Source of the DNA: Anolis carolinensis
Lineage: Eukaryota
Assembly: GCF_035594765.1 (NCBI RefSeq)
Contig: NC_085843.1
Location: 53,304,201-53,368,200 of the forward strand
DNA: 64,000 nucleotides
Reading direction: 5' to 3'
The position numbers and the translations under genes were made by a program. The notes beneath the pieces were generated by a model, which was not told where the DNA came from, ran no database searches, and was given only the letters and a program-made list of their open reading frames with translations. Every line of letters begins with the position of its first letter. Positions within the stretch are counted from its first letter, which is position 1. Shown piece by piece: positions 1 to 20,844 of the stretch.

Positions 1-850
1 CTGAATTCCTGAGCTAAGCTGAGTCCTTTATCTACACTTGGACAGAATAATTTATTCAACTAGATCAATTTTTTATTTTAAAAAATCATGTTATATTGTG
101 TAAGAAGCATTCAAGATTGACAATTTGAAAAGTAAATTAGTGGCCGATTTCTGGGTATATGAAATAGATTATCAATTACATGTAGAATTGATTCAACAAT
201 GTCTCTTGTCACCAAATGCAAAACTATTACAATATGTCTTGGGTCAGAATTATGATGAGGAAAGCATTAAAGAAAGTCCAGCGGGCACCGTGACCTTGAT
301 AATTTCCCATTAGTGTGAGCTGTTGATTTTATACATATGTAGTAGCTATTATATCTTAGCTCTCTGTGCATATAAATGTGCTGAGTTTAACTGGGCAGGG
401 TATGAAGCAAACCTGCCACAAGGCTTTATAGATCTGCTTTAAACATCAGCTTTATCAGCCATCTGACATTTGCATGTAAATGTATTTCACTGACATTTTG
501 AAATAACTACTTACTTTGCAAAGTGCCAAAACTCCAAAATGCCTATAGCTCAAGCTAGAGCTGAAATAAAAAAATATGATTGTTCAAAGTAGTGTGGCAC
601 AACCAAAAGTAAAATAAACATTAAATCATTTTTTCATGATTTTATTACAAAAGTATGTAAATATGGTGCTATAATATTAGATAATGGAATAATTGCACAA
701 TATAAATGTCTTTAAATTAATAATATGACTTTAAAAATCTTGCATAAATCCTAGCTTTTCATGTGTGTGTATTCAGATGCAGATTTAATTCAGGGGTGCC
801 CTTCCCATGAGGATGGTGTCTTACCCCTCTTTTCCCTCATAACTGAACAA

Positions 851-908
851 AATCATAGATTTGGAAGGGACCTCGTGGGCCATCCAGTCCAACCTCCTGC
901 CAAGAAGC
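851..908 (-). mobile_element. CR1 LINE 3'-terminal fragment
   Basis: aatcataga-ttggaagggacctcgtgggccatccagtccaacc matches the reverse complement of the CR1 3' end at 37110-37185. Confidence 0.8.
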
Positions 909-999
909 CAAAAAGTGTTTCATGAGAACGGTTGAATCTAATCCAATATACTCTTCAAGTTTAATATTGGCAAGATAAGCTACCTGCATTTGCAAAATA

Positions 1000-1322
1000 C
1001 AGTAGAGTCTCACTTATCCAACATAAACAGGCCGGCAGAACATTGGATAAGCGAATATGTTGGATAATAAGGAGGGATTAAGGAAAAGCCTATTAAACAT
1101 CAAATTAGGTTATGATTTTACAAATTAAGCACCAAAACATCGTGTTTAATAACAAATTTGTCAGAAAAAGTAGTTCAATACGCAGTAATGCTATGTAGTA
1201 ATTACTGTATTTACGAATTTAGCACCAAAATATCATGATGTTTTGAAAACATTGACTACAAAAATTCGTTGAATAATCCAGAACGTTGGATAAGCAAGTG
1301 TTGGATAAGTGAAACTCTACTG
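1000..1322 (+). mobile_element. Tc1/mariner(pogo)-type MITE, copy 1 (subtype A)
   Basis: TIR CAGTAGAGTCTCACTTATCCAA, TA TSD at both ends, five copies in the window. Confidence 0.92.
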
Positions 1323-1865
1323 TAGCTTGAGAACACATTCTATTTGTTTGATCTTTGCGTACAACAGAAACGATGGATTGTTGCATGTCAAAACTGTCAT
1401 GTCAATATAGTTATGATGATTTCAATTGCATGAGCAAGTCACCTGACATTTAAAACCATAGGCATGCTCTTTCAAGCAAAGGGAGACCTTATGATTTTAT
1501 TATTATCACTGGTATTTTATTATTATAAAAGACTACTACTATACCCAACTGCATGAATCATAGATTCAAGTACGCATTCAGTACTTGATGCAATAGGTTT
1601 ATTCTGCTTAGAACTTACCAAGAGGTTTCCAAATTATATCTGGCTCTATTAAGACTGATTTTTGTTGTGTGCAAATGGCAGCTGTAAATGCTGTAATATT
1701 GGATTTTAAAGTAGTTATGGGACAGCATAACTGGTACAAGTTCACATAGACAAATTTGATGTGTTCAACTTTGGCAATATTTATCCATTTTGAGGAAATA
1801 CAGTGAAATAAATGTAGGGTTTTTTTTTGTTTTTTTTTGTTTTCCTGGCAAAACTTACCCTCCTT

Positions 1866-2096
1866 AGGACTCATCTACACAGACCATTTAATGCAGTTTG
1901 AACCTAGCTTCAAACTGCAGTGACCAAATTCCCACAAAAATATGCAAAAAACCCCCCAAAAAACCTCTTAATGTACACCAGTGCCATCAGGTTACCAAAT
2001 TAGTTCCAAGATTTCCTGTGTAATCATCTGCACATCAAAACCATTTTATTCAATACCTCTTTGAAACTGAATTAAATGTTCAGTGTGGATGCACCC
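1866..2096. mobile_element. PIF/Harbinger-like MITE
   Basis: Imperfect TIRs ggactcatctacacagaccatttaatgcagttt / aaactgaattaaatgttcagtgtggatgcaccc. Confidence 0.65.
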
Positions 2097-5000
2097 AAGA
2101 TTTCTGGTCAATGAGCATATAGATATATAGATATTGTTATATACATATATGTACATGTGCATCAGTGAGTTTGTTCATAGATAAGGAAAGATAACTTAAG
2201 TTAGCAATTATACTCTCTTACCCATAGTTCTCAAAAGCATTCCCAACCAGAAAATTAAAAGTTTGAGGAGCAACGTGTTTAACTATGTGGACACTTGCCA
2301 ATTAATGAAATTTTGTACATGTTATTAGAAAAGTATAGTGCCTTGAATCTAATTTTTCTGATGAAACCTCTGACTTTATATTGTCCCATGTATTCTAGTA
2401 CAATGAAGGATACTTCTGAAATCATGGGTATGTCAGGAGAACAGTCAAAAACCAGATGCCCAAGCCTGTGGGCATCCATAAAGTTGCTCATTAAGTCCCA
2501 TCCAATAGATGTCCAAAATAAAATTTGGCAAGATAAATATGAAATGTAATAAATGTCAGTTGTTATGATTTTTTTTAAAGCCCTAATATTTTGGCTTCAG
2601 TTGGGGGTATCTGCAATAATATGTTTTGATGGTTATCAGAAAACCCCTTGGAAGTTTCCTTCTATCTGCTTTACCCTTTTTTGTTTGGTTTTGGTTTTTG
2701 CTTTGCATTTAAACACAGAAAATATGTTTTATTGAAAATGCAACAACTCCCGCAGGAAAGCACTCTAGCAGCAGTCAGGATTCAGTTATTCGCCCTGTGT
2801 CTGCTGTGAGAAATGTTTATCTCCCTGCTCCCTTAGGTAGCAATGGCTTTCTCTCTTCTAAAAGAATGTCTACTGGTCAGTGTATTTCTAATTCTCTCAG
2901 AACAGTCATTTACATATCAAAGGCCTGGGATGAGTAAACATACTTCATGGTTCCATCTGTGATTTCATTCACTATTGAGACTGAAAATAAAAACTGTGTA
3001 CTACTGAAGAAATGTTTGTCCTTCAAGTCCATACTGTTTTTCTTTTGAATTTTCACAGCAAGCTATGGCACATTTCGTTTTTTCAGAGTTGTGACAGACT
3101 TTTTCCAACTTAATACATGTTTCAATAAAGCAAATACTGTAGAAATAATAGTTTGACAAACCTTAAAAACAAACTCATTGCTGTTTTTGGTAGTAAAAAC
3201 AATTTCTTGCTTTGTTTCCCAACACTAAAAAAATATTATAGTCCTTTACTTTTATATGTACAAACAATGCTGGTGGTGGAAAAAGAGAATATATGTATTA
3301 TATTTTATTTTATATCCTGCTTTTCTGCAGGATGGGATTTGATTTTTGCTAAGCAACAGATAAAATCTCTAGGGTTTTAAAAAATTATTTCATTAACAGC
3401 ACGTGCAGGGTCTACTCTCATAGATAAGTCACACAGGGCTTTGTAGGATTTATTCCATAGAAAGTGTTTTTGGGATTTCTGCGTAACAGCAAATGTTGAT
3501 AAAGATTTATGTTGATATCAGGGAATAAGTTCTTCCTTGAAAGTTTGGAACATGTACCATTAAGGGAAGAGGCATTTCTGCTCATTGTTCTAATTTTCTG
3601 GGTGATGATCAAAATACTTTTCATTCTCTATTGAAAAATGTAGTACATATTAAAAGCTGCAGTATTATTTGAAAATTTTAATCAAATACATTTTGATTTA
3701 AAAGTAAGCAATGCCTTACTAGATTTGTATGAACTTTTTGATATGACCTGAGTTGCTGAATTTTCTACAATTAATTAGTAACAGAGGAAACTATTAATAG
3801 ACTCCCCACCCTGCCCCCGGTATTGCCTGGTTCCAATCCTTGTAGAAGTGACATTACTGTGGAATATTTTGATGAGAACTGAATTCTCAGAGAACAGATT
3901 GATTAAACTATGAATTTCCTTTGGAGAACAGTCATTTCTCTGGAAGAAATAAATCCTGCCCAGTGCTCATTTATATTTCTGCACTTATTAAAATATGTTT
4001 CAATTTTCAATTGCTCATTTCCTGGCATAGAAGCTTAGCTAAGAGAATGGATTACAGATAATTTATTTTCTTTTTCTTCTTCATGCATTTTAAGCAGAAC
4101 TTATTAGTTAGTTGGACTGTGAACTGGACTTCATCTTCTGCTATTTCCCACTAGAACAATAGCAACAAACAAGTCTTCATGAGTTCATTCACATTTTTCC
4201 CTATTATCATTAAACCCACAGATAACAAAGTGAGGGAGGTATCAGTAAACCTGTGGTCCCTTCCGTTTCCTATGTTTTATAGTATCTAATAAATGAAGTT
4301 TACATGAACTAACTTTTGCAGCACTGACAAGCAGAAGGACATCCCCAATTTATCAAAGAGTAGACAGTGGAAAATAACGGGCATAATATCTCATCTAAGA
4401 TGTACTCAAAGCAGATCTCATATCAGCAGGACCTGTCATTAATTTATTATCTGCAAAGTCAACACAAAAGTTTGAAACAGGTTTTAAGCATTGCAAAAGC
4501 AGCAAGGTTCACACTGATTTTCAAGCTTCAGCAATGTCCCTTCTGGGTTTACTATGATATGTAAATCTATTCAGCTCAACTTTTTTCCACAAACGTATGT
4601 TAAGTTTAAGTTCGAGGGCAGCTTGTATGGGGAATGAATCCACAGAGGAACACAAGAAAAAAGGCTATTATGGAAACACTTGGAATGTAGCCATTGCCCA
4701 AAGAGCAATTTGGAATCTTCTAAACTCGTCAATCATAAAAAAAAAAAGATGTATTGTGCTGCACGACCTCATTGCCCTCTAGCAGCACTGATCCAGAAGG
4801 AGAGCAGCTGTCACTGGCTAGCTTCCCAATGAGCTGCTCAGTAGCAGATGCAGACAGCTCAACAAAGATTTAATAGGGCTTCAAATATTAATTCTCATTT
4901 TGATATTTTGAAGGATATCTATTTTTTATAGGATGCCGGGCCCAGACACTGACATGTTTAGTCTCCTGAAATGTTATCACTTGAACTCATCTCCCTGTGT

Positions 5001-16102: not shown

Positions 16103-17220
16103 AGAATGGCAATTTATTTAGTGGTCCTATAAAAAAAAAATAACCTAACATGGATATAGAAAAAGTGGTGAATTTGACAGTGGTCCTGTATTTTTTTTCT
16201 TTAAGGATATCTGAAATTTTGGAAAGCTAGGATAATGAAAAGAATCAATGACTTCTCCCCCATCTGTTGCTCATTAATATCACGCAGTAACCAAATACAA
16301 GCTGGAAATCGCTTTCACACTTGAAGGGGAAAATGTCTTGTTCTCTCTGTCTCATTTCTGTTTACATTGCTGTGAAAATAGTTGGTGTGACATGTAACAT
16401 TAGAAAAAGCCAATTTCAGTTGAAATGCTACTCCTTAGAAATGTAACTATTAAATGTGAAACATCTGGAGAAAGCATAGTAATATATTACCATAGATAAA
16501 AATGTTATTATCACAATCTCAGCACAGAGAATAGGACTTCATCCCACGGTTCCTTTCCAAGTGTTTCTATACATTTGAAACACAAAGCCCCACAGAGCCC
16601 ATCAGATTACACAAAATAATGGGTTTCCCATTTGAGCCCTTTTAAAAAAAATTATTAAGATGTATTTTTTACAACATCACTAAAAAAGAAAGGAAAGGGT
16701 AGCTGTAGAGAGAAGAAACGATAGCAGAAAAAGGATGTGGATGGAGAAGGGGGTAAAAGAAAAGGGAATAAGGGGGAAAGAAGAGAGAAAAGTTTATGTA
16801 CTTCCAGTCTTCTTCATTGTGATTTGGTTGTTATGCTTAAATTTCAGTTTCTTAGTCTATGCTTCTCCTATATAACCCTCCTCCTTGTGAGACCATTTTT
16901 CTTTTTAGTTGATTGCACTATATTATCATCTTTCATTTCTCTCATAACATATACTCCTTAATACATTTCTCAAATGTGTAAAAATGTAAAGATTTTTAAA
17001 ACGCTTAGGAATTGACTCCAGGTGGATCCCTGCACATAGAAATCAGTTAAACCAGTGAAATTTTGGTGTGATAGCAATTGTTTTCTTTTTTCATGTTCTT
17101 TCTGTTTTGTTACGTTTTCCTGTGGGCGGTCCTTAAATTATTATTATTATGACACAGCAAACAAGATAGATATGCTGGATTTCATATCACAAAATCACAA
17201 GTCGAACACTTCCCAAGTGT

Positions 17221-20200
17221 CTAAAACTGTGTGATGTATTTTCGGATGATGCGCTCAGATCCCAGCAGAGTGGCCTTTTGCAGCTGGCAGATCGTAATTT
17301 TGTCAATGTCTATTGTTTCCAAATGCTGGCTGAGATCTTTTGGCACGGCACCCAGTGTGCCCATCACCACCGGGACCACCTGCACTGGTTTCTGCCAGAG
17401 TCTTTGCAGTTCAATCTTGAGGTCCTGATAGCGGCAGAGTTTTTCCTGTTGTTTTTCGTCAATGCGACTGTCACCTGGGATGGCGACATCAATGATCCAA
17501 ACCTTTTTCTTTTCCACAACTGTGATGTCTGATGTGTTGTGTTCCAGAACTTTGTCAGTCTGGATTTGGAAGTCCCACAGTATCTTTGCGTGCTCATTTT
17601 CCAATACTTTTGCAGGTTTGTGATCCCACCAGTTCTTTGCTGCTGGGAGGTGGTACTTGAGGCATAAGTTCCAATGAATCATTTGGGCCACATGGTTGTG
17701 CCTCTGTTTGTAGTCTGTCTGTGCAATTTTCTTACAGCTGCTGAGGATATGATCAATGGTTTCGTCAGCTTCCTTGCAGAGTCTGCACTTTGGGTCATCA
17801 GCTGATTTTTCGATCTTGGCCTTGATTGCATTTGTTCTGATGGCTTGCTCCTGGCCTGCAAGGATCAGGCCTTCTGTCTCCTTCTTCAGGGTCCCATTCG
17901 TGAGCCAGAGCCAGGTCTTCTCCTTATCAGCTTTTCCTTCAATTTTGTCAAGGAACTTCCCATGCAATGTTTTGTTGTGCCAGCTGTCAGCTCTAGTTTG
18001 TAGTGTGGCTTTCTTGTACTGGTTTTTTGTCTGCTGTGCTTTGAGGAGTTTCTGATTTTTGACTTCAATCAAAGCAGGTTTATCATTTTGCTTTACATAT
18101 TCTGCCAGGGCATGTTCTTCCTCTTTGACTGCTTGTTTTACTTGTAAGAGTCCTCTGCCCCCTGATCTTCTAGGCAGATAGAGCCGGTCAACATCACTGC
18201 GAGGGTGCAGTGAATGATGAATGGTCATGAGTTTTCTTGTTTTTCTGTCCAAATTGTCCAGTTCCATCTGTGTCCAGTTTATGATGCCAGCAGTATATCT
18301 TATGACAGGTATGGCCCAGGTGTTTATGGCCTTGATGGTGTTGCCTCCATTGAGCTTGCTTTTGAGAATTTTTCTGACCCTTTGTGTGTATTCTTTGCTG
18401 ACCACAGTTTTCTCATGTTCATGCTTGATGTTGTCCAGCTGTAATATGCCCAGATATTTATAGGCCTCTGGCTGGTGACACTTTATTGTTTGGCCATTAG
18501 GCATTTTTATGCCCTCACTTTCAATGATTTTTCCCTTCTTCAATGCCACTGTTGAACATTTGTCCAAGCCAAACTCCATGCTGATATCAGTGCTAAAAAT
18601 TCGGACAGTGTTAGTCAGAGACTGGATTTCAGTTTCCGTTTTCCCATACAGCTTCAGGTCATCCATGTACATCAGATGCGAAATTTTGTGAGAATTCTTA
18701 CAAATTTTGATAGCCGAGATTTGTTTTTTGTAAAATTGTTGACAGAGGGATCATGGCAATAATGAAAAACAGAGGTGACAATGAGTCTCCCTGGAAAATT
18801 CCTCTCCTGATGTTGACAAGTCCATAGTTTTCATTTCCAACAAACAGTTCAGTTTTCCAGTGCTCCATCATGTTTTCAATGAAGGTGCCAACGTTTTTAC
18901 TAATCCCGATGGCGTCCAGGCACTTGATGATCCAGCTGTGTGGGAGTGAGTCAAAGGTTTTTTTGTAGTCAATCCACGTCATGTGAAGATTAGCTTTTGG
19001 GCTTTTACAGTTCTCCAGAATCATTTTGTCAATCAATAACTGGTCATTTGTGCCCCTGCTTTTCCGTTTGTTGCCTTTCTGTTCATCTGGCAAGATGTTT
19101 TTTTCTTCAAGATAGTCTTGAATTCTATCAGCTATGATGCCAGTCAGTAGTTTAAACATAGTGGGCAGACACGTTATTGGCCTGTAGTTTCCTGGTGCTG
19201 CTCCTTTTGCTGGATCCTTTTGCATCAGGTAAGTTCTTCCAGTTGTTAGCCATTCACTGATACTTCCTTTCTGCAGCATCTCATTGAATTGTTGGGCCAT
19301 TTTTCCATGTAAACTAATCAGATGTTTGAGCCAAAATCCATGAAGTTGATCACTACCAGGCGATGTCCAGTTCTTGACTTTTTGCACTCGTTTGCTGATC
19401 ATTTCAGTTGTTATTTCCATCTGTTCCATTTTGTTCTGTGAGAATTTTCCTTCAAACTCCTTTATCCACCCAGCGTTTTTGTTGTAGTTCTTATTATTTT
19501 CCCAAAGCTCTTTCCAGAACTTCGTTGTTGCAGTTTTCTCTGGCTTTATGGTTACTGTGTCTGTTGTTTGGTTCAGGCTCTGGTAGAACCGTCTTTGGTC
19601 TGATTGAAATAGTTGATTTTGTCTGTACTGGATGATTCTGGCTTCATATCTTTCAATTTTTCTGGCTGTTGCTGTAATTTGTTCTTTCACAATTTCCAAG
19701 GCTTCTTCAATTTTTCTGGTGTTCAGCCAGTACTTTCTGATCAGGTGTTGCTTGATTTTGTCATTCTTCAGTTTCTTCTCTTTCATATTTTTCAGGTTAC
19801 TTGCATCTGATCTAAGTTTCTTGATTTTCAACTCTAGCCTGACCTTCCACTTTGGTTTTCCAGTCGATTTTCTTTGGGGCTGCCTTGGTTGTAGGAGCCC
19901 AAGCTCTTCTGTTACTATCACTGCTGCACTGTAGGCATACTGGTTTGTTTGTTCAATTGATGTTATTTGGGCAGTGGAGAGTACTGCATTCACATCTTTC
20001 ATGAGAGGCGCCAGGTGTCTCTTGGGAACTGTTTTTAGAGTTGGGAGCCGCTGTCTTATTGCATTTGCTGCAGCATGAGCCATGATCTTATCCTTGAGCT
20101 CTTGTTGTCTTGCTGTCAAGGTTCCTGGTGGTTCAACAGGTGTTTAAAGTGCTGGTTCATCAAATTCTTGCAAAAGCTCCACACTTTCTTCTGGTTCAAT

Positions 20201-20635
20201 CTGTTCCACCATTCCAAGTGTTGCTGGAGTCTCTGCTGCTGTCTGTGCTGTGGTCTGATGGTAATTTGCTTTGCAGATTTTCTGGATTTCTTCAAGTTGA
20301 ACTTCACTGAACACTTTGTTTCTGATTATGAATCTTCGTTGGTCAGCCAGTCGGGGTTCTGTTATCTGTGAGTCAGGGTACTCTTGTTTCCATAGCTGAT
20401 GCATCCTTTTTTGGTAGCCGCGCTTTTCAGGTTCAGAGTTGCAATAGCATTTCATGACTGTGCGGTTTTCTGGCATTGTATATTTCTGCCTCTTCTGTGA
20501 CTGTTCATTTGGGTTTTGATGATTCCGTAGCCCACTTGTCGATGGATGTCCAGAATCAGCAGCATCCACCGCGGTCCTTTTTATCCTGGGCGACGACCGA
20601 GCCAGTATAGACTTCGTTTTGGTTTGATTCTCCAT
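17221..20635 (-). pseudogene. R4/Dong polyprotein (~1137 aa when repaired): N-terminal Myb-like domain, reverse transcriptase, CCHC zinc knuckle, restriction-like endonuclease
   Basis: ORFs 20144-20635 and 18698-20119 share a frame and are separated only by a TAA at 20144-20146. A +1 frameshift near 18700 leads into ORF 17221-18672. Motifs: NYRPITCL, WIDYKKTFDS, GIFQGDSLSP, YMDD, YKYLG, CRLC..ETIDHILSSC, RHN, (S)D..DVAIP..EK. Confidence 0.95.
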
Positions 20636-20721
20636 AATGCTAATGGGTTAGGTGCACTTGGTTGCATTCCTCCACTGAGGCCTCTCTGGCTTGGTTGGAC
20701 CTGCCGGTAGTTACACTACCG

Positions 20722-20795
20722 CCAGCACAGCCCTCAGCATCCTCAGAATGGCTAAGCCCCCCACCACGTCAAGGTGGCACCTGCGGGGGGGGGGG

Positions 20796-20796
<1 letters not shown>
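20722..20796 (-). ncRNA. Putative HDV-like (L1Tc Pr77-type) self-cleaving ribozyme at the 5' end of the R4/Dong element
   Basis: Minus strand reads (C)12-GCAGGTGCC-ACC-TTGACGT-GGT-GGGGGG-C-TTAGC-CATTC-TGA-GGATG-CTGAG-GGCTGTGC. Hand-folds as P1, P2, P3/L3, P1.1, P4 and a CNRA J4/2. Confidence 0.72.

Positions 20797-20844
<48 letters not shown>
20797..20844. repeat. (TAT)16 microsatellite, upstream target flank of the R4 element
   Basis: Directly visible; gives the poly-Y and poly-L spurious ORFs. Confidence 0.97.

Follow-up and report, generated by a model that had tools for sequence, protein, structure and literature searches.

Here, we report that the first nucleotides of a Dong/R4 retrotransposon in the lizard Anolis carolinensis probably encode a self-cleaving ribozyme of the HDV-like, nested double-pseudoknot type. 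The candidate covers positions 20796-20650 on the minus strand (about 141-147 nt) of the window, the 64-kb stretch of DNA analysed as a whole, which contains no N. P1, P3 with its loop L3, P1.1, the P2 pseudoknot and J4/2, the features that define the HDV-like class, can all be assigned in it; a G.U pair at the base of P1 and a match at the Rfam gathering threshold are absent. The prediction draws on the sequence of the head, on its alignment with related heads from other genomes and on the variation found among Anolis copies of the family.

The element and its target site

The element that carries the head is, from its coding sequence and flanks, a Dong-type member of the R4 clade, an RLE-type LINE sitting in its (TAA)n target. 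Its position and that of the flanking (TAA)n are as follows.

17149-20796, minus strand: Dong/R4 element
20797-20844, minus strand: upstream (TAA)n target microsatellite, 48 nt, the leader in a putative read-through transcript
17137-17148, minus strand: short (TAA)n-type tail at the 3' end

Three ORF pieces make up the coding region of this copy (20635-20144, 20119-18698 and 18672-17221, all minus strand), the second corresponding to the RT and the third to the end of the RT, the CCHC and the restriction-like nuclease. The start codon, an ATG at 20635, lies 15 nt past the 3' strand of P2. Pfam recognised only RVT_1 and zf-RVT in the ORF, and an APE nuclease (Exo_endo_phos) was absent in the same search. 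Near the C-terminus, a CCHC knuckle (CRLCx12HxxxxC) is followed by SDITVV...IIDVAIP...EKxxKY, a restriction-like nuclease. The RT motif, found where ORF pieces meet, reads MYMDDLKL; in a published alignment the corresponding motifs are FYMDDLKLY in R4, IYMDDIKLY in Dong and AFADD in R2 (R2 type AF/YADD). The closest protein matches are Anolis carolinensis entries with 97% identity. Finally, (TAA)n flanks the element at both ends, as it does in the relatives L002, L004, L007 and L024-L026. The R4/Dong identification made in a first-pass annotation of this DNA is borne out by the YMDDLKL motif, by the CCHC and restriction-like nuclease without an APE domain, and by the (TAA)n on either side.

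The 5' half of the fold

Read on the minus strand, the (TAA)n (20844-20797) gives way to 12 C and then to GCAGGTGCC-ACC-TTGACGT-GGT-GGGGGG-C, in which the following parts of the fold can be assigned.

20785-20796, minus strand: P1, 5' strand, the C-run (12 C here), with the predicted cut 5' of the first paired C
20783-20784, minus strand: J1/2 (GC)
20773-20775, minus strand: P3, 5' strand, ACC
20766-20772, minus strand: L3, UUGACGU, 7 nt; U20772 and C20768-G20767 occupy the conserved U...CG positions and G20770 takes part in P1.1
20763-20765, minus strand: P3, 3' strand, GGT
20757-20762, minus strand: P1, 3' strand, GGGGGG; 7-8 G in some copies (letters inserted at 20756)
20756, minus strand: P1.1 partner C, forming a single pair with G20770 of L3

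This half agrees with what had been proposed: P1 from the C-run and GGGGGG, P3 from ACC and GGT, the 7-nt L3 and the P1.1 pair G20770-C20756 are all present, and the C-run begins exactly where the 48-nt (TAA)n stops, placing the fold at the very 5' end of the element. The first pair of P1 is C-G in the anole head, in contrast to the G.U wobble of HDV. Active L1Tc-type ribozymes likewise have C1-G39 at the base of P1 and lack the wobble (PMC4035085), so that a G.U at this position is not universal. A second P1.1 pair is impossible in the anole head, where it would be U.U.

Relatives and the nine-sequence alignment

Conservation was assessed on an alignment of nine sequences, a small set of which several are decayed: the Anolis head, two from Phrynocephalus, one from Hemicordylus and five copies of a repeat from metagenome contigs. 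The Phrynocephalus forsythii (L007, L006) and Hemicordylus capensis (L008) copies were retrieved through the N-terminal ORF piece; outside the comparison stayed a Crotalus locus (L009) and L010, which offer no usable 5' end, and a Hemicordylus copy (L001) 5'-truncated inside P4. JGI metagenome contigs scanned for the core pattern gave 13 matches, eight of which carry the same head and supplied the five distinct sequences used. The remaining matches (L011, L013, L017, L020 and L022) come from GC-rich contigs in which no other part of the fold is present; we treated them as fortuitous or unrelated and did not use them.

The head of L007 follows (TAA)n as it does in Anolis, and reads CCCCC-AAGGGTGCC-TCC-TTGTCGT-GGT-GGGGG. 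Across the nine sequences P3 is paired in 96% of cells and P1.1 is kept in eight; the CG of L3 is lost only in PhrynoB and in the Hemicordylus copy, both decayed. Neither P1 nor P1.1 covaries in this alignment, the pairs being always C/G, and in P1 no covariation is possible because its strands are homopolymers. The ribozyme core has at least 27 identical nucleotides between the lizard elements and the unrelated metagenome repeats.

The 3' half and the predicted catalytic cytosine

The first-pass annotation had described a compact architecture of 75 nt. In the alignment, J4/2 and the 3' strand of P2 fall distally, about 110 nt past P3, and the predicted catalytic cytosine is C20661 and not C20737, some 75 nt further downstream. 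The 3' half is accordingly mapped as follows.

20776-20782, minus strand: P2, 5' strand, AGGTGC plus C20776
20664-20755, minus strand: P4 domain, 92 nt, closed by the helix GC(C)ATTCT 20752-20745 / GGAATGC 20670-20664
20738-20750, minus strand: CATTC/GGATG hairpin within P4, mutually exclusive with the closing helix
20701-20725, minus strand: 10-bp hairpin within P4
20669-20680, minus strand: CCTCAG..GAGG within P4
20658-20661, minus strand: J4/2, C-C-A-A, with C20661 as the predicted catalytic cytosine, invariant in 9/9
20650-20657, minus strand: P2, 3' strand, made up of G20657 (pairing with C20776), a bulged T20656 and GCACCT 20655-20650
20722-20737, minus strand: the J4/2 (CTGA) and P2 3' strand proposed earlier, reassigned to the interior of the P4 domain

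P2 is a contiguous helix of 6 bp to which a C-G closing pair is added across a 1-nt bulge; otherwise J4/2 would count 5-6 nt. Its strands are AGGTGC/GCACCT in Anolis, GGGTGC/GCACCC in Phrynocephalus L007, GAGGCACT/AGTGCCTC in Hemicordylus and TGAGGTGC/GCA(C/T)CTCA in the metagenome heads. Overall, 93.7% of its cells are paired, and three of the seven pairs are compensated by changes on both sides (A-U/G-C, U-A/C-G and G-C/A-U). A C-N-A-R-G junction stands just before the 3' strand in all nine sequences, with its C, A and G columns invariant. When the strand most complementary to the 14 nt preceding P3 was sought without bias, it lay directly after C-N-A-R-G in eight of the nine; in the ninth, the decayed and 5'-truncated PhrynoB, it lay inside C-N-A-R-G, and a parse anchored on the junction pairs five of six positions.

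Taken over the whole alignment, the distal model leaves 87.4% of cells paired, versus 40-56% with slid partners, and nine pairs are changed on both sides versus 3.1 expected; none of 500 shuffles reached its pairing. RNAalifold, run on the same nine sequences, preferred P1 plus a shifted GCCAC/GTGGT hairpin and returned nothing further because it cannot draw pseudoknots.

It is against these data that the compact ribozyme must be weighed, in which CATTC/GGATG would be P4, C20737-T-G-A would be J4/2, and P2 would form between GCA..GCC and GGC..TGC across an internal loop. Every one of these parts exists in the window copy, and Anolis copies do not vary at 20737. When the 5' half was held fixed and the downstream 115 nt were shuffled, a 3' half of the compact type turned up in just 2.5% of shuffles (0.5% for the distal type). 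The CATTC/GGATG hairpin itself is kept in seven of the nine sequences, with 91% pairing and two compensated pairs. Against this, both Phrynocephalus copies lack the ~40 nt that carry the proposed P4, J4/2 and P2 3' strand, and yet retain the 5' half and the distal junction. Moreover, the column of C20737 is G in Hemicordylus, the outer pairs of the interrupted P2 have letters in only one or two of the nine sequences and its inner three are 71% paired, and G20732, which it would place in P2, reads A at 9-33% of depth in Anolis. Other Anolis subfamilies, finally, carry CT(G/A)CTCC as the 5' strand of the hairpin and could not pair there at all. We consider the compact fold very improbable, and neither its J4/2 nor its interrupted P2 has been retained. 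The practical consequence is that a 75-nt construct designed on it would be without the active site.

The P4 domain

The hairpin proposed as P4 is real, although it is only one hairpin within a domain of 92 nt. Its 5' strand, CATTC, has two alternative partners: GGATG in the hairpin, which is conserved in the metagenome copies, and GAATG in the closing helix, which has support from the lizards. An unconstrained fold of 20755-20662 recovers the closing helix (-37.8 kcal/mol, z -2.3). Anolis has three versions of this helix, each complementary within itself, namely GC(C)ATTCC/GGAATGC in the subfamily of the window copy, CTGCTCC/GGAGCAG and CTACTCC/GGAGTAG, the strands having been matched across copies (clipped ends against variants). 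Between the last two, the lone G/A difference faces a lone C/T difference on the opposite strand. Phrynocephalus has a fourth version, CTGCTCC/GGAACAG.

We also noted that most copies of the family read CCTCAGCTGAGG at 20669-20680 (minus strand), a perfect palindromic hairpin within P4 that is retained in Phrynocephalus. The window copy departs from the palindrome, with TG for CT at 20674-20673.

Chance and model searches

A resemblance to HDV arising by chance in a GC-rich 5' end has to be considered, since homopolymer runs of C and G pair trivially. We regard it as hardly credible. The window has a single occurrence of the 20-nt core, which appeared in none of 100 shuffles, and conservation with compensated pairs extends over three lizard genera and unrelated contigs. 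A generic HDV descriptor (P1 of at least 6 bp, P3 of 3 bp, L3 with U...CG, P1.1, C-N-A-R and a contiguous 6-bp P2) matched a sole locus, the one proposed, in the 128 kb of both window strands and nothing in 40 dinucleotide shuffles. Because the descriptor was written after the sequence had been seen, this result only supplements the covariation. Its matches always give 20655-20650 as the 3' strand of P2, with the cytosine at 20661 or 20660; it is the comparison with relatives that singles out 20661.

At the gathering threshold Rfam found no ribozyme family in the window or in eight loci; in E-value mode the sole relevant match was a partial one of 13 bits (gathering 44) to RF02682, the F. prausnitzii HDV ribozyme, over P1-P3-L3-P1'. 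A match this weak is expected because the models handle neither the pseudoknot nor a 92-nt P4, but it does not count as positive evidence.

Variation among Anolis copies

Logan contigs from four runs and three organisms yielded 834-3072 pieces per run on 20500-20800. Among these pieces no variant occurs at 20655-20650 (the 3' strand of P2), C20661, A20659, A20658 or G20657. Position 20660, in contrast, is C or T in RNA sense, with T at 30-65% of depth across copies, and 20656, where the window copy has T, reads A at 81-99% of depth. Thus, positions that the fold leaves free vary while the predicted core of P2 and J4/2 is invariant. The 3' strand of the P4 closing helix varies at 20667-20664.

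Clipped ends at 20791 read (TAA)n; a typical copy therefore has a run of 7 C, and its 5' end lies where P1 begins. The longer run of the window copy (12 C) is an expansion. A loose end at 20520 at first suggested that another family might carry this head, but it is explained by clipping close to the edge of the interval to which the contigs were aligned.

Function and proposed mechanism

The head might instead be a conserved, structured 5' UTR in which cleavage has been lost or was never present. It could then serve in translation initiation, as an internal promoter or as a binding site for the protein of the element, and it would resemble HDV by inheritance or coincidence. The canonical G.U is missing at the cleavage site, a single P1.1 pair is possible and the very long P4 could slow folding. 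In addition, the alignment between lizards and metagenome repeats takes in the entire 5' UTR and is not confined to the ribozyme core, and the L1Tc head doubles as a promoter (PMC3383444). On the other hand, all positions that define the HDV core are kept and variation falls on nucleotides that the fold leaves free; the 5' ends of genomic copies lie where P1 begins; an active ribozyme stands at the homologous position in Bombyx Dong; and L1Tc ribozymes, too, begin with a C1 paired to G (PMC4035085). We judge such a non-cleaving leader unlikely.

The self-cleaving head is most simply read as a device that would free element RNA from read-through transcripts. What the sequences show is the fold, its covariation and the position of the genomic 5' ends at the start of P1; cleavage and this role are inferred. 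The mechanism is proposed by analogy with the ribozymes of Bombyx Dong, R4, R2 and L1Tc. The element would be transcribed within a longer host transcript running through the microsatellite, and the head would fold co-transcriptionally. C20661 would act as the general acid/base, with attack by the 2'-OH of the last leader nucleotide. The resulting cut at the junction of (TAA)n and C-run would leave an element RNA with a 5'-OH that begins at nucleotide 1, leaving the compact fold 15 nt ahead of the ATG that opens the ORF. The window copy keeps all core features, and its head may therefore still cut despite the broken ORF.

Comparison with known ribozymes

HDV-like ribozymes were reportedly described in Dong of Bombyx mori and in R4 of Ascaris by Ruminski et al. 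in 2011. The closest known system is Bombyx Dong, which belongs to the same LINE clade as the anole element, inserts in the same (TAA)n target and has its ribozyme at the first nucleotides of the element. In 2013 it was reported to cleave itself co-transcriptionally, exactly where a (TAA)7 leader meets the element (Eickbush et al., PMC3774820); the same cut site is predicted for the anole head. P3 also starts with ACC in both, the Bombyx sequence being known to us from a published-primer 5' end only. An HDV-like ribozyme is present in Ascaris R4 as well, its self-cleavage likewise being published, and ribozymes at the 5' ends of R4, RTE and L1Tc elements are cited in the same work (PMC3774820). 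The novelty implied for an R4 ribozyme in the first-pass annotation is thus forestalled by these published cases. What sets the predicted ribozyme of the anole apart from those of Bombyx Dong and Ascaris R4 is its vertebrate host, the C/G homopolymer P1, the 92-nt P4 and the bulged P2. A literature search, with the 2009 and 2011 Luptak-lab papers outside its scope, returned no description of such a ribozyme in lizards.

L1Tc of Trypanosoma cruzi (L1TcRz/Pr77; PMC3185411, PMC4035085) resembles the anole head in that its first nucleotide is a C paired to G, and it shares with the lizards GGUG before the 3' strand of P1 and CUAAG-CGC at the passage from J4/2 to P2. Rebuilt from its published primers, L1Tc reads ...TGGTGCCAGGGTCTAG...GAAGCTAAGCGCC, and its CUAAG-CGC is identical to Phrynocephalus and to those Anolis copies with T at 20660. 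The GCTAAG given for L1Tc in the first-pass annotation was therefore right as to CUAAG, although it aligns with the distal junction and not with the CTGAG to which it had been compared. The two systems differ in other respects: L1Tc, an APE-type LINE from the ingi clade, has a compact ribozyme of 77 nt that is also a promoter, whereas the lizard fold takes ~145 nt in an RLE-type LINE. ACC-U..ACGU-GGU-G of RF02682 aligns with P1-P3-L3-P1' of the anole head, its 3' half remaining unaligned, so the first block of shared letters fits that family equally well. Given its length and host, the label of an L1Tc/Pr77-type ribozyme does not suit the head, the shared letters being those of a conserved core; a likeness that extends over such a core shows neither the swap of a module from an ingi-type LINE, as had been suggested, nor common descent.

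R2 (PMC3774820) is, like the anole element, an RLE-type LINE that is co-transcribed with its target and bears an HDV-like fold with a variable P4 and a P1 of 6-7 bp. Unlike the lizard core, which is so closely matched in the metagenome repeats, R2 ribozymes show little sequence conservation, and they usually cut 9-36 nt upstream, in the 28S.

The present analysis extends the Dong/R4 ribozyme, which is experimentally established, to a predicted member in vertebrates, and provides a corrected map (C20661, the distal P2 and the long P4) for a very abundant repeat family of the anole. RNA-templated gene insertion now makes use of RLE-type LINEs and their ribozyme heads as components (PMC13708176), and in view of that use further natural heads are of some applied interest.

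tRNA-like heads in sister lineages

In L024, L025 and L026, which at about 50% identity are the nearest intact relatives of the ORF, as well as in L002 and L004, a tRNA-like head and no HDV-like fold is found right after the (TAA)n.

L025:2336-2412, L026:25-100, L024:28-230, L004:5165-5243 and L002:5651-5730: tRNA-like heads

These relatives have 50-55% amino-acid identity to the anole Dong ORF, and three are intact and full length. The Rfam tRNA model scores above gathering at L025:2340-2412 and L004:5171-5243; ARAGORN called no tRNA in the tRNA-like heads. Such a head could be processed by RNase P or be of pol III type, doing the job of the ribozyme. We tentatively suggest, as a possibility that we would not favor outright, that (TAA)n-specific Dong elements may carry an exchangeable RNA-processing module as their 5' head, either an HDV-like ribozyme (lizards, Bombyx) or a tRNA-like head replacing it. 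The ribozyme head, nearly unchanged, also stands in front of a non-coding repeat in unrelated metagenome contigs. The tRNA-like head could then be cut by RNase P at the same position, and template jumping by the reverse transcriptase may have supplied the heads. If this is true, release from a read-through transcript would have been achieved in two unrelated ways. The tRNA-like heads of sister Dong lineages bear on how promoter-less, site-specific LINEs get defined 5' ends.

Downstream of either type of head there is a conserved block, CTATACCGG.TCGGTCGTCGCCCGGGT.

Window 20584-20610, minus strand; L007:4822-4858; L025:2490-2525; L026:181-216: CTATACCGG.TCGGTCGTCGCCCGGGT block

The block lies inside the N-terminal coding region in lizards and upstream of the called start codon in L025 and L026.

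The metagenome repeat

The metagenome heads belong to a repeat, at least 1.1 kb long, found in JGI contigs from a eukaryote, the boundary of the repeat being the C-run of the ribozyme-like head.

L014:3916-4885; L018:1904-804, minus strand; further copies in L015, L016, L019, L021, L012 and L023: metagenome repeat

This head, which shares the stretch of identity noted above with the lizard core, is alignable across the whole ~110 nt. No ORF of at least 70 aa follows it, and searching the repeat contigs by tblastn with the ORF pieces from Anolis gave no match; the only blastx match was a short piece of RT encoded on the opposite strand in L018.

Two of the contigs set aside from the scan, L013 (1392-1480) and L017 (minus strand, around 1077-1158), are bacterial-looking and share the 22-nt search pattern together with 60 nearly identical nucleotides upstream of it. 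They diverge completely right after GGGGGTTA, a point that looks like the junction of a mobile or variable segment unrelated to the ribozyme.
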